A DNA stretch of 64,000 bases from contig JALMLS010000120.1 in the NCBI GenBank assembly GCA_038496445.1, positions 52,188 to 116,187 on the forward strand, in the 5' to 3' direction. Source of the DNA: Trichosphaerium sp. ATCC 40318 (lineage: Eukaryota; Protista; Tubulinea). The first letter of the stretch is position 1; every line of letters starts with the position of its first letter. The translations under genes and the position numbers were made by a program. The notes beneath the pieces are model-generated. The model had not been told where the DNA came from and made no database searches. It was given only the letters and a program-made list of their open reading frames with translations. Of this stretch, positions 851 through 6,400 are shown one piece after another.

Positions 851-959
851 TTATTGTCTGGCATTGGAAGTATTTGTTGACCGTACTCAAAAGATAGGAA
901 GTTAAGCAATCTATTGGTGTACCATACATTTATCAAACTCGAAAAGTAACAGACAGGCG

Positions 960-1871
960 TTATGAGTACAAGTAAATTTTAATAAGTTTGTTAGAATAAT
1001 TACTTTCCAAGCATTCTTTAATTTACAGTGTTGTTTAGTAATAGCTTGTTCGAATAGTATAGATTGATTGCAGTGTTATTTACGTTGATACCTGGGCACA
1101 GTGTAAAAATGTTGAAGGTTCTTTGGCAGGTTTTTTCCTTTTTTTTTTTCTACAAGAAAATCGTTAGAGCATGCTTGAAACTAATACAAAGAGTTTCTCA
1201 AGTAGTTCACAATTCAAATATACTACCACTTATAGTATTCCCCAACATAAATTTGTCTAGAAAACTATACAGGACAATGTTGCTGACAGGAAAGCTGTCT
1301 AACAAGCCAATACTTAAGGTGGCCAACTTGACTTATGTACGTTGTTTTCATACCTTGACTACTTATAATTAATGGTAACCCTTTCCTTCCTTTCATTACT
1401 ATTGGATCACCTTTACCATCTACTTTTTTCTCAAATAGTATATCCTCAATGTTGCTATTGTTTAGGAGTATTTGATGGAACAGTTTGTAAAAGGCAATAT
1501 CCAGCTTGATCCATCCTGTATTGTCCATGTTTATTATCACTTTTCTGATATTCTTGGAATCATAAAGGGCCATATATACTATAAAGGGTCCAGGATTCAT
1601 CGAGCTATTACCACCAATGTGTAACACCTGAGTATCTGTATTCTCATGGAACAAATAATCACAAAAGTTCTTGCTATTCTTCAAAAAAAAGTAAGGTTGT
1701 CAAAATCTGGTAACACGTCGCTAATACTCCAATATTAAATCGTACCAATACTAATCCTTTGATATTATTTTTACCATAGAAACTAAATTTATCTATTCGG
1801 GAAGCTGTTTGTATTGCAGCATGATGATAAACCATAAACCTTAACAAGAAAAAAGTGAGAAAAAAATACAT
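960..1871 (-). pseudogene. degenerate LRR(RNI)-like coding relic
   Basis: ORF fragments 1674-1871 and 1265-1684 are in different frames and contain NTDTQVLHIGGN, SKNIRKVII and NNSNIEDILF repeat-like segments. Flanking frames are interrupted by stops. Confidence 0.25.
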
Positions 1872-2050
1872 CTGAAGTCAAAACTCGATATCCGCTGGGG
1901 TACTTACGAGTTAATTTTTTGAATATAGCGGTAGGCTCTCAACGCTGCTATATTTTTTGCCTCTCTTTTTTGTGTTGCCCAACCCTTGCGTACAATAGTT
2001 TTTACTTTTGTAGCGCACGTGATCTAAACAAACGCGGTTTTTTTTTTTGA

Positions 2051-3341
2051 CTACTGATGATTGTTCTGTACCTTAGCTTTCCATAACTGTGGTCCTATTT
2101 GCTCTGAATCAAATGTATAATTGTCAGATGCTTTCTTCCAAAACCTTGGAACTTATAAAGGGTCAATGCGTTAAAAAATAAGATAGATATTGAACAAACT
2201 TGTTACAAGCGAAAATATTAGAACCTTGGTACAGTGTATGCAACGCTTGAATTGGGTTTTTCCTTTCATCGCATCCCTTCAATATAAAGCAGTACATAGC
2301 CTGCCGATTTTTGAAGTTAGTTGTGTTATTTATCCTTTCTTAAATAGTGAACAAAACGCACGTGAGTTTTCCAATTTTTGTTGCTTAAGTTTTTTTTGTC
2401 AGCAAAATCTCTTTGTGATACCTCTTGCCACAGGTGCTAAACAAACGTTACCTTCTAGGAAATTACATCACAAATATAATGGTCATTTACCTCGGTGTCT
2501 ATGACCATGTGTAGTTTCCTACTGGTCATAGAAAGTGAAACAATAGACGTAATGTCCATGTGTGGAACAATATAGAATTGCCACGTTTCTATCGGCATCT
2601 TCTCTGTTGTTGATAGTCCAATCCACGCTTCTTCTTCCTTCTTGACCTCCAGATCTAAGAGGTGATCAAGTGCTAACTTGGCAAGCAAATGTTCGCAAAT
2701 TTTTTTGGTTGAAGCTGCTTGATTTGATTTGATAACAACGTCATTAAACAAGGTAACTGTGGAGCAAAGACATTAGTTACAGATGAACCACGATTAAACA
2801 CTAAGGCATCAACAAGCTACAACAGCACGTACTTTGTCCTGTAAACGGAGATGAGCCAGAACAAGTGTATTGTGGAAGAGGTTGTTTAAGTTTCTGAAGG
2901 TATTCATTGAGTTTGCCTTTGTGGTTATCTGTACACGTGCTGACAAGTACAGGTTCTTCTAAAATACGTTCAGTTAATGTTTTACTCCTTCCTTCCTCAT
3001 TTTCTGCAAAATTAGACGCATTTGACGGTATTTCAGAGGTGCAGAGGTGTTTTTCGCTAGAATCGTGGTTTTCCTCCTTTTTATCATTCTCTTTGCTCTG
3101 TAGCGAGGCCAGCGCTGTTTTGGCCGCGTTGTGTTCTGATTCTTTTTTCTTTGCTTTCGGATCACTCTCATACGTAGTCTCATTCACTTTTACAGTTGCC
3201 TATACTACAATAAACCCATTGGAACGTTTTTCCTAAACGTACAATCCAAAGATCGTCTGTGCGTCTCTGAGCGGAATAAACTGGAAGTGGTACACCACAA
3301 CGCTGGCAATGCTCTTGTAGTTTACTTTTCCAGGTCGCCAT
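2051..3341 (-). CDS. protein with two double-stranded-RNA-binding motifs followed by an F-box (6 exons)
   Basis: ATG at 3341. dsRBD1 is WKSKLQEHCQRCGVPLPVY...ATVKVNETTYESDPKAKKKESEHNAAKTALASL. dsRBD2 is HKGKLNEYLQKLKQPLPQY...STKKICEHLLAKLALDHL. The F-box is MPIETWQFYIVPHMDITSIVSLSMTSRKLHMVIDTE-HLWQEVSQRDF...NWK. Five GT-AG introns keep the frame to TAG at 2051-2053. Confidence 0.8.
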
Positions 3342-3484
3342 AACGCCCTGTTATCCTTTTAGCCTCAGCTAGGAACATATATTCAAGTCAAGGTTGTTCT
3401 TTCAACCATATTTTGTTCCAAACAGAAATAACTGATAATCTCTGTTGTTTATACATTGTTTATTTTAATGTTTATAATGATTAT

Positions 3485-6400
3485 AAAGTTTTACACCAAC
3501 GTATGCTCCAAGTGATAATACAATAATAAGACTAAGATAGAAAACGTTAGAAGAGAAAAAAACTTATCAAAGCTGAAGTAAAAAAAAACAACAATATTTA
3601 ACAAACACGTGCCCAATTATTATTGCTGCTATGAGCACACGATCAATTGTAGATTCTTTTCCTGGGATTTCAGGAGTTCCATTTACATCAAGAAGAAGCC
3701 TTCCCATACTATGATTACCATCTATAACTGCTGAATTCTCGAATTCTAAAATTAAAGTAAAAATCAGTTTAAAAAATTCCATTGTTACGCACTCCACTCG
3801 GCCCAAAGGCGTCCGCCAACCAAGTATTTAGATACATCTAGCTTATTAACTTGTAGTCTAAAACCAATACTTTCATTTCCCACCATTTGTGGTATTGTAA
3901 GTGTCTGTTTAATAGAGCCCTAAACTCAATTAGAAACGAAGGAAAAAATACTGTACATACCCCAATGTCAGATAGAGCGTTAAAATTAAAAACTTTCAAC
4001 ATCAAGTTCCATGGATATGTAGTCACATTTGTGACGGAAAACTAGTGCAAGAAAGGTAAGTAACAAACAAAAAAAACATATCTGCCAAATTTTCTTTGAA
4101 AATAAGAAAGAAATGAGAATTTAAGTTTTTATCAACACTGTTTACCTTACTATCAACAACATCATAATGGAACATTGATTCGTTAACATTACTTCTACCT
4201 TTAATTTTAGGTAAATGACAGTTCACCTTGACCTCAAAATCAAGTACTGCGTCCTAAGCATCAAAAGCGTTAAAACACAATTTTTGGTATTTCAAAAAAA
4301 AAAAAGAACACTGCGTACCATGTCACATTCCAAGTCTGCTTTATCCCCATCAAGATGTATTTTATATTCTTCCAAGTATTCAAGTTCTCTAGAATCATGA
4401 CACTCTATATACAAAGTAAGAGAGGCCACAAATCAGAGCAACGTGGTAAAAAGTCAGTTTTCATCCTAAAACTTACGTTTGTGCTGACTTGAAGTGACTG
4501 TTAAGCCACATGAAAACTGTCTAGGCTTCTTACACTTGGAACCTTCCTAATAAATCTATCAGTACCGTAAAAAATGTTTAAACCAGTAGGTGGCTGGCAG
4601 GTGAGTTGCCGTACGTAATCAATTGGACAAATACAACCCTCGCGTGTTTGTGTTTGATAGCAAAAGGCTAAACAGTCACTGGTATGCTTCTGCCATACGC
4701 ATTGGACACCACTACGTCATCTGTATAAGAAAAAAGCCACGAGTAAATAAAACAATACCCTTTACAACCCAAATCAATCGTCGTGCAAGATGTATTCAGT
4801 ATACTTTGGCCAACACAAACAATCTACAAATAAAATATAAACATTGCAACACAATAAAACAAACGCTTCTGTACCTGAGATATTGCACAACCTTCTGGAA
4901 TAGTTGGTGTAGTGAAAGGAACAAACGTATTTCCACATTGAAGCTAAAAAATATAAGCACGTAGAGATAACCTGTTACGCACTTGTGCAACTCTACAAAG
5001 CGTTCCATTATCACCAATACGTATCGAATTATCTTGGCATATGACCTAAAAAGGGTTTAACACAAGTTGCTAAAAAACAAAGCTAAAATACCTCTTGAAT
5101 GTTCCAACAAGACGCAAGAGATTGGTTGAACTTATCAGCGTCTATACCACGATTAAGACCACAATCAATCTCAAGAAATATTAGTAATCAGTAACCTAAC
5201 CCTACAAGTTTGTACAGTCTTAAGCCTACAATCATTAGGCTTGCCAGCTTCGCAAGCAATTGTTTTATCCTACATAGAACGTAAACTTTTTCATGTTCTC
5301 CAATGTTGGCTTCAAACGAACGCACTTGTATCTCTGTACACCCAAGTAAGTTACCTTGGTCATTCGTCTTTGGACATTCTTTCTAATACAAAGTTTACAA
5401 ACCAACACTCATACTACAAAAAGCAAGAGTACCTTGTACCAAGTACATTGTTCATCAACATGAAGTTCTGGACAAGGCTTATCTCGAGTAACACAATCAC
5501 TGCTGTCAGGTACTTGGTCCTTTTCTACTACTTTGCCATCGCATACCATCTAATCAAATAAGCACTTGTAGGTATATAATTTTGAAGCACCTCTTGTGTA
5601 CTACACCTATACTCCCATGCTTGATAACCAAATATTGTAAAATTATTATTACACCGGACTTGAGCAAAGCAACTATTGTTTGTATTGAAAACTATCTCTT
5701 TGAACCTTGTGGGATCTGATACTTCTTCAATACCACAAAAAAACTAGGATTTGTTACAAATGACCGAAGGAGAAAGTCTCAGAATCGATTCTTTGACATT
5801 TGAACGGGTTTTTTTCCGTCAGAATTTCAGCGTACTTTTTCTATTTTACAATCATCTGTTGGGTATGTGTAATAAGACGTTAGGTCCTCAACACGCGTAA
5901 AGCAGTCTAAAGAGAGAACGGTACACTCGTCCAAATTAATATCGGCGATGTCGCTCTCTGTTCTATTTGTTACGTTTACCGTTACGCCGTTACAATCAAA
6001 GGCGTAAACAGTGCACCATTTGCCTGTACATTTGTCTACCTACATAAAAATGAATCTTTACCGTGTAAATGGCGTCAAGAAGGCGCGAATGTATAAAATT
6101 AGGCGTAATTGAACATTTGGGAAAATAACACCTATTCTACGTACTTTGGAGGTGACATTTCCAATAATACCAATGCCATTACAAGGTTCTTCAACCTCAG
6201 TCGCGTTTTCCGCCGGTAAATCTTCTAAAGATCGCTTCCGTCGCGTGGAAAGTGTTTTTGGGGAATATGGAGCAGGAAAAAACACTTTTCTGGCTGTTGT
6301 AATTGTGGCATGTAACGATTCTACCATAGGGTTCACCTTCTCAGCGTAGACATTGTTTATAGTGTCTGACGGCCACCCTGTCGTGAAATAATCCAACACC

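Follow-up and report, generated by a model that had tools for sequence, protein, structure and literature searches.

Gene structure and transcription

The minus strand of a 64-kb window of the genome of Trichosphaerium, a marine amoeba (the whole stretch of DNA that was analysed, to which all positions refer) carries a gene of 10 exons with 1572 coding bases. Its 523 codons end at a TAA at 1078-1076, as determined from joints in RNA contigs and a check of the reading frame (Table 1). By exon-length arithmetic, the predicted protein consists of a first double-stranded RNA-binding domain (dsRBD1, residues ~3-66), dsRBD2 (~126-189), a probable F-box (~208-254), dsRBD3 (~284-357) and a C-terminal tail (~361-523). 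No paralogue of any exon was found by tblastn within the 64-kb window. The window is in keeping with the GC content (37.69%), mean intron length (75 bp) and number of introns per gene (∼8) published for the genome (PMC10521059).

The first-pass annotation had joined six exons by canonical introns into one frame, and most of that model stands: a single frame of 327 codons is open on the minus strand up to a TAG at 2053-2051, introns 1 to 5 are all GT..AG (lengths in Table 1), and introns 3 to 5 are spliced in RNA. Its 3′ end had to be revised, because the stop at 2051-2053 is removed by a 48-nt intron and four more exons follow.

The RNA evidence consists of assembled contigs from four public runs (X1 to X4) aligned to positions 900-3600. 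Several of these contigs end in template-switch-oligo or Illumina adaptor sequence and hence derive from cDNA. Joints that read CT..AC on the plus strand, and GT..AG on the minus strand, were found for intron 3 in X4 and for intron 5 in both X2 and X4, while behind 2300 a loose end of 11 bases agrees with the sequence from 2362 onward, indicating that intron 4 is spliced as well. Two runs of separate studies, X2 and X4, join 2072 to 2023 and skip 48 nt, again CT..AC on the plus strand. As this joint drops the TAG at 2051-2053, the frame runs on to the TAA at 1078-1076. Additional spliced joints lie downstream at 1907/1840, 1745/1679 and 1353/1150, so that exons 3 to 10 are linked by spliced RNA contigs from several samples. 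At the other end of the gene, the reverse complement of the template-switch oligo directly follows 3376 in the X4 contig 3092-3376, which places a 5′ end of sense-strand RNA 35 nt upstream of the ATG. The gene is real and expressed.

Table 1. Exons, introns and 5′ end of the dsRBD/F-box gene, in order of transcription.
Feature	Positions	Strand	Content and RNA joints
5′ UTR	3342..3376	-	sense RNA 5′ end ~3376, from X4 contig 3092-3376
Exon 1	3243..3341	-	ATG at 3341; 33 codons; dsRBD1 first half
Intron 1	3200-3242	-	43 nt
Exon 2	2833..3199	-	122 codons + 1 base; dsRBD1 second half, acidic/Ser-rich linker, dsRBD2 first half
Intron 2	2757-2832	-	76 nt
Exon 3	2491..2756	-	2 bases + 88 codons; dsRBD2 second half, linker, F-box helices (probable F-box)
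Intron 3	2437-2490	-	54 nt; spliced in X4
Exon 4	2362..2436	-	25 codons; end of probable F-box (HLWQEVSQRDF) and linker; joint 2436/2491 in X4
Intron 4	2301-2361	-	61 nt; loose contig end matches 2362 onward
Exon 5	2225..2300	-	25 codons + 1 base; linker and presumed dsRBD3 helix 1
Intron 5	2152-2224	-	73 nt; spliced in X2, X4
Exon 6	2072..2151	-	2 bases + 26 codons; presumed dsRBD3 strands 1-2; GT donor at 2071
Intron 6	2024-2071	-	48 nt; holds TAG 2051-2053
Exon 7	1908..2023	-	38 codons + 2 bases; dsRBD3 second half; K-R-E-A-K at helix 2 start
Exon 8	1746..1839	-	1 base + 31 codons; orphan C-terminal region starts; joints 1837/1906 (cut +2) and 1678/1746 in X2, X4
Exon 9	1354..1678	-	108 codons + 1 base; orphan-region core; joint 1149/1354 in X1, X2
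Exon 10, coding part	1076..1149	-	2 bases + 23 codons + TAA 1078-1076; basic tail; X2 contig reaches 1069

Probable joining of exons 1 and 2 to the rest of the gene

The RNA support for the proposed splicing covers introns 3, 4 and 5 but does not extend to introns 1 and 2. Three contigs lie over these two introns (X3 2746-3106, X3 3090-3472 and X4 3092-3376) and all run through unspliced; no contig over them has a spliced intron 1 or 2. Assembled contigs drop minor forms, and the unspliced contigs over introns 1 and 2 are therefore absence of evidence rather than counter-evidence. Were the two introns retained, translation from the ATG at 3341 would end after 53 codons.

Four features of the coding sequence argue that introns 1 and 2 are real. 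Exon 2 has an open frame of 122 codons with zero Met, the dsrm profile positions on the two sides of the exon 1/2 junction are complementary (1-21, then 34-66), the two ends of exon 2 align to opposite halves of the plant DRB2/DRB3 dsRBDs, and both the exon 1/2 and exon 2/3 junctions yield dsRBDs of normal length (63-64 residues). On this reasoning, exons 1 and 2 are very probably joined to the remainder by splicing of introns 1 and 2.

A different gene structure, in which introns 1 and/or 2 are not productively spliced, would have its product start with the F-box Met (ATG 2601-2599). The ~316 residues would make up an ordinary F-box protein, with the F-box at the N-terminus followed by one dsRBD and the orphan tail, and exons 1-2 would be left as a decaying or separately used piece. 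Such a structure would fit the unspliced state of all contigs over introns 1 and 2, one of them capped at the sense 5′ end, and the stretch from 2663 to 2745, which is without any RNA contig cover. It would also place the first Met of the exon 3 frame, which falls exactly at the start of the F-box, where F-boxes usually lie, near the N-terminus. We consider this structure improbable, since exon 2 has a half-dsRBD at each end, which exon 1 and the beginning of exon 3, respectively, complete with correct length and phase, and since the open frame of exon 3 begins as far upstream of the F-box Met as the acceptor at 2756. The sole exon 1 difference in X4 is synonymous, and the missing spliced contigs weigh less in view of the loss of minor forms during assembly and the antisense appearance of one of the unspliced contigs.

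In one X3 contig the template-switch oligo sits at 2746, on the plus-strand 5′ side; a second X3 contig extends past the sense 5′ end (3376) to 3472. The X3 coverage from 2746 to 3472 may come from an antisense transcript over exons 1-2, from pre-mRNA or from DNA carry-over. An antisense RNA over exons 1-2, if there is one, would form dsRNA with the mRNA.

Three double-stranded RNA-binding domains

Domain scans were done exon by exon, with a Pfam cutoff of 23 bits for the dsrm profile PF00035. Exon 1 matches positions 1-21 of the profile (E 0.024; 15.6 bits, below the cutoff for what is half a domain alone). Exon 2 matches in two stretches with 35.7 bits, above the cutoff; its first 33 residues correspond to profile positions 34-66. 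Against solved structures in the PDB, the first 38-45 residues of exon 2 align to the second half of the dsRBDs of plant DRB2/DRB3 and the last 26 residues to the first half of the same domains. Exon 7 matches positions 36-65 of 66 (E 2.6e-4; 21.9 bits, again below the cutoff for half a domain alone), and its best PDB matches, with weak E-values, fall without exception on dsRBD proteins (Xlrbpa, R2D2/Loqs, PKR and RDE-4). The first half of dsRBD3 is presumed to lie in exons 5-6; exon 5 alone has no Pfam match. The two dsRBDs claimed by the first-pass annotation are thus both present (exons 1-3), and a third, which it had missed, lies after the F-box, with its second half in exon 7.

Measured across the splice junctions, dsRBD1 and dsRBD2 are 63-64 residues long and dsRBD3 is ∼74 residues, compared to the 65-70 expected of a domain with alpha-beta-beta-beta-alpha order. 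The basic patch at the N-terminus of helix 2, as read from the sequence, is KKKESEH in dsRBD1, TKKICEH in dsRBD2 and QKREAK in dsRBD3. At the beginning of helix 2, dsRBD1 and dsRBD3 retain the basic patch (KK/KR..K). In dsRBD2 this helix is degenerate (TKKICEHLLAK), and dsRBD1 is without the loop-2 His; these two departures suggest that some of the dsRBDs may bind protein, not RNA. In a low-confidence single-sequence AF2 model of exon 3 (pLDDT 51), the dsRBD2 half forms a strand followed by a helix. The profile matches establish the identity of the domains as dsRBDs, with RNA binding as their putative activity.

A probable F-box between dsRBD2 and dsRBD3

A single exon, exon 3, encodes in one frame both the F-box helices and the second half of dsRBD2. 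Exon 3 matches the F-box profile PF00646 over positions 15-37 of 43 (E 0.016), with 15.6 bits vs a cutoff of 20.5; this score comes from exon 3 alone, and the remaining profile positions lie partly in exon 4. The helices in exon 3 read MP.E...I...L......L..L..SRKL..VID. Outside the stretch aligned by Pfam, both the MP.E start and the LW continuation (HLWQEVSQRDF) stand at the spacing expected of an F-box, as read from the sequence. An Atlas feature search with residues 46-88 of exon 3 returned F-box families as all of its top named clusters, the best at 0.90. The F-box with a trailing LW....RDF..WK helix that had been proposed corresponds to the profile match in exon 3, with its score below the cutoff, and to the LW stretch in exon 4. 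An F-box, with putative docking on Skp1, is probably present.

The low score (15.6 bits vs 20.5), the restriction of the alignment to positions 15-37, and the failure of exon 3 to match any PDB sequence by phmmer or to yield a usable model leave room for a false positive, in which case the product would be an RNA-binding protein with three dsRBDs and helical linkers, unconnected to ubiquitination. This seems very improbable to us: the E-value of 0.016 was obtained from an exon that does not contain the last F-box positions, the Atlas features indicate F-box families independently, and the MP.E and LW landmarks are correctly spaced beyond the aligned stretch. F-boxes are moreover hugely expanded in this genome; the F-box repertoire of Trichosphaerium is heavily expanded, and the F-box is among the commonest domains of its putative giant-virus-derived genes (PMC10521059).

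The position of the F-box differs from the C-terminal one given in the first-pass annotation. Approximately 270 residues follow it, comprising dsRBD3 and an orphan region of ∼165 residues.

The orphan C-terminal tail

The tail (residues about 361-523, exons 8-10) is expressed, correctly spliced and open in frame. Exons 8-10 match no Pfam family, and no LRR family was found even at E 10. An exhaustive HMMER search of exon 9 against 1.84 billion protein representatives found no true relative. Five matches of exon 9 in that search were rejected as repeat artefacts rather than homologues; four of the five are bacterial STAND/WD40 proteins that match one 20-residue piece repeatedly, and the fifth is an adhesin-like fragment with adaptor-derived MCIRDR/SYTHLTLPT tags. 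Matches of exon 9 to PDB sequences by phmmer are at chance level only, and its single-sequence AF2 model (pLDDT 46) is unusable. We did not adopt an LRR identity for the tail, for which the only lead was a weak one in the Atlas, to LRR_6 (RNI-type) clusters at 0.90-0.92; shuffled sequences reach this range in 4-10% of cases, and Pfam gives no support.

The ∼165-residue tail occupies the place in which F-box proteins usually carry their substrate-binding domain, and it is thus a candidate substrate-binding module. The dsRBDs are consequently not the sole possible recognition modules of the protein, in contrast to the earlier view of them as the only recognisable ones.

Relatives and sequence variation

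Single-exon searches found no orthologue of the gene that would attest conservation of its architecture. Exon 2 had no relative in a word-index search whose length window is blind to full-length relatives. Scans that see close relatives only found none among viral contigs (exons 2, 3 and 9) or metagenome contigs (exons 9 and 3), and within this reach a recent giant-virus origin receives no support. A full-text literature search found no description of a dsRBD/F-box fusion, in agreement with the first-pass view of the architecture as uncharacterised; the corrected architecture (three dsRBDs, a central F-box and an orphan tail) appears to be undescribed as well.

Three of the four coding differences in strain X4 are synonymous. 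A contig from X1, a run labelled as another organism, is ∼97% identical to the linker region of exon 2 (2846-3120) and could represent a diverged strain, an allele or a paralogue. Its differences cluster in the linker between dsRBD1 and dsRBD2 and are mostly amino-acid-changing (H>N twice, I>M, E>G), suggesting that this linker evolves fast. Taken together, the X4 and X1 differences, a tiny sample, fit constrained domains joined by a fast-evolving linker.

Comparison with known F-box and dsRBD proteins

Like the F-box receptors of SCF ligases (FBXL, FBXW and FBXO proteins, among them Skp2), the predicted protein has an F-box-like motif of ∼45 residues, (L/M)P.E ... L..L..V/S.K/R.. ... LW, followed on its C-terminal side by a region that could bind substrate. 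Unlike in these receptors, no LRR, WD40 or Kelch repeats are detectable after the F-box by Pfam, and the absence of detected LRRs C-terminal to the F-box sets the protein apart from the FBXL class. The F-box is central with dsRBDs on both sides, an arrangement for which the literature provided no description.

Two N-terminal dsRBDs and a separated third are also the arrangement of the tandem-dsRBD Dicer cofactors and their relatives (TRBP, PACT, Loquacious, R2D2, RDE-4, HYL1 and the DRB proteins), and the best matches among solved structures are the dsRBDs of DRB2/DRB3, R2D2/Loqs, RDE-4 and PKR. The resemblance is confined to the level of domains and gives no indication of orthology: Dicer cofactors consist of dsRBDs only, whereas here a probable F-box separates dsRBD2 from dsRBD3 and the protein ends in a ∼165-residue orphan tail.

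PKR, ADAR, RNase III/Dicer/Drosha and DHX9 resemble the predicted protein in that RNA-binding modules bring an effector to RNA. The effector here would be a cullin-RING adaptor motif, in contrast to the kinase, deaminase, nuclease or RING of the dsRBD-effector fusions and RING E3 ligases. Ubiquitin ligases that bind RNA are already known. Roquins reportedly unite RNA binding with E3 activity, and to our knowledge the RNA module of the known RNA-binding E3 ligases (Roquin, MEX-3, CNOT4) is a ROQ, KH or RRM domain and not a dsRBD. We found no described cullin-RING receptor with canonical dsRBDs, nor a described dsRBD-effector fusion with ubiquitination as its output.

Polerovirus P0 and plant FBW2, which targets AGO1, are F-box proteins that tie SCF-type ubiquitination to RNA silencing. 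Both recognise AGO1 by protein-protein contact and have no dsRBD. No homology to P0 or FBW2 was detected.

Trypanosoma brucei CFB2 offers the clearest precedent for an F-box protein bound to RNA: it binds the VSG mRNA and interacts with SKP1, and its F-box appears to limit the abundance of CFB2 itself (PMC8051951). CFB2 differs in being described as an RNA-binding protein of an "unconventional" kind, no dsRBD being named, and in stabilising its mRNA via MKT1 (PMC8051951). No sequence relationship between CFB2 and the dsRBD/F-box gene was detected.

Proposed function

The most likely mechanism, which we put forward tentatively on the strength of domain composition, is that of an RNA-tethered SCF substrate receptor. 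The F-box would dock on Skp1/Cul1, and the dsRBDs would keep the receptor attached to RNA that is double-stranded or highly structured; ubiquitination would fall on proteins that sit on the bound RNA or are caught by the orphan tail. In favour of this mechanism is the presence of the dsRBDs and the probable F-box in one frame that stays open over ten exons, while the AF2 models of exons 3 and 9 (pLDDT 51 and 46) lend it no structural support. Should it prove to bind Skp1 as well as dsRNA, the protein would provide a simple, testable case of RNA-dependent ubiquitination in a little-studied eukaryotic lineage, one with heavy giant-virus gene traffic. This prospect is tempered by the lack of a detectable orthologue; some F-box fusions in the Trichosphaerium genome may be neutral products of domain shuffling, and the present gene may be such a product rather than part of a conserved pathway.

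The dsRNA-guided ubiquitination proposed in the first-pass annotation is plausible from the identity of the domains. In a stricter form of the RNA-tethered receptor, which we think unlikely, the three dsRBDs would place the SCF ligase on long dsRNA, with replication intermediates of viruses, paired sense and antisense RNAs or hairpin transcripts as ligands, and bound proteins would be ubiquitinated only when dsRNA is present. Such a receptor would correspond, in a protist, to the effectors PKR and OAS, which dsRNA triggers, and its output would be ubiquitination.

The dsRBDs could also act as protein-protein modules that capture a dsRBD protein or a Dicer-like enzyme, leading to RNA-independent SCF degradation of an RNAi or RNA-processing factor. 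The third dsRBD of TRBP, PACT and Loquacious binds Dicer, and the layout of the predicted protein recalls these cofactors in its two N-terminal dsRBDs and separated third. The weak R2D2/Loqs matches of exon 7 in the PDB, the degenerate RNA-binding helix of dsRBD2 and the missing loop-2 His of dsRBD1 point in the same direction. It is dsRBD3, however, the domain in the protein-binding-type position, that has the most canonical RNA-contact motif (K-R-E-A-K); dsRBD1 retains KKK.SEHNAAK. We regard capture of a protein partner as an unlikely role for these domains.

A further possibility, which we judge to be quite unlikely, is that the protein is mainly a dsRNA-binding protein acting in RNA stability, in RNA localisation or as an RNAi cofactor, and that its F-box chiefly limits its own abundance through self-ubiquitination by SCF. 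RNA-binding modules outnumber all other modules in the protein, and there is a parallel in CFB2, whose abundance is raised by deletion or mutation of the F-box and for which auto-ubiquitination has been proposed (PMC8051951). A self-limiting F-box would leave unexplained why an intact, expressed tail of ∼165 residues follows the F-box and dsRBD3 in the usual place of a substrate domain.

Neighbouring hairpin and upstream gene

An inverted repeat at 662-855 consists of 85-nt arms (662-746 and 771-855) that are 89% complementary and separated by a 24-nt loop. The repeat occurs as a single copy, and the 64 kb contain no other inverted repeat that is both tight and strong. The hairpin starts ∼220 nt beyond the stop of the dsRBD/F-box gene, between this gene and a convergent ORF on the plus strand, and folds with -138 kcal/mol (z -22.9) on the strand of the gene and with -132 kcal/mol on the other. 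Neither this difference in energy nor the number of G-U pairs (3 vs 1) is decisive for a strand-specific fold. An assignment as a MIR6462 precursor (Rfam) was rejected, with 37 bits vs a cutoff of 96 on both strands, a score that reflects a generic hairpin shape. In the stricter, dsRNA-dependent form of the receptor that we think unlikely, the hairpin and the possible antisense RNA over exons 1-2 might even let the locus supply its own dsRNA ligand.

Upstream of the gene, the ORF pieces of the neighbour match no Pfam family. In an X2 contig covering 3483-3615, position 3532 is joined to ∼3614 with 81 nt skipped, which indicates that this neighbour is also a spliced, expressed gene. The skipped segment lacks clean GT..AG ends; on the minus strand they may read GC..AG.
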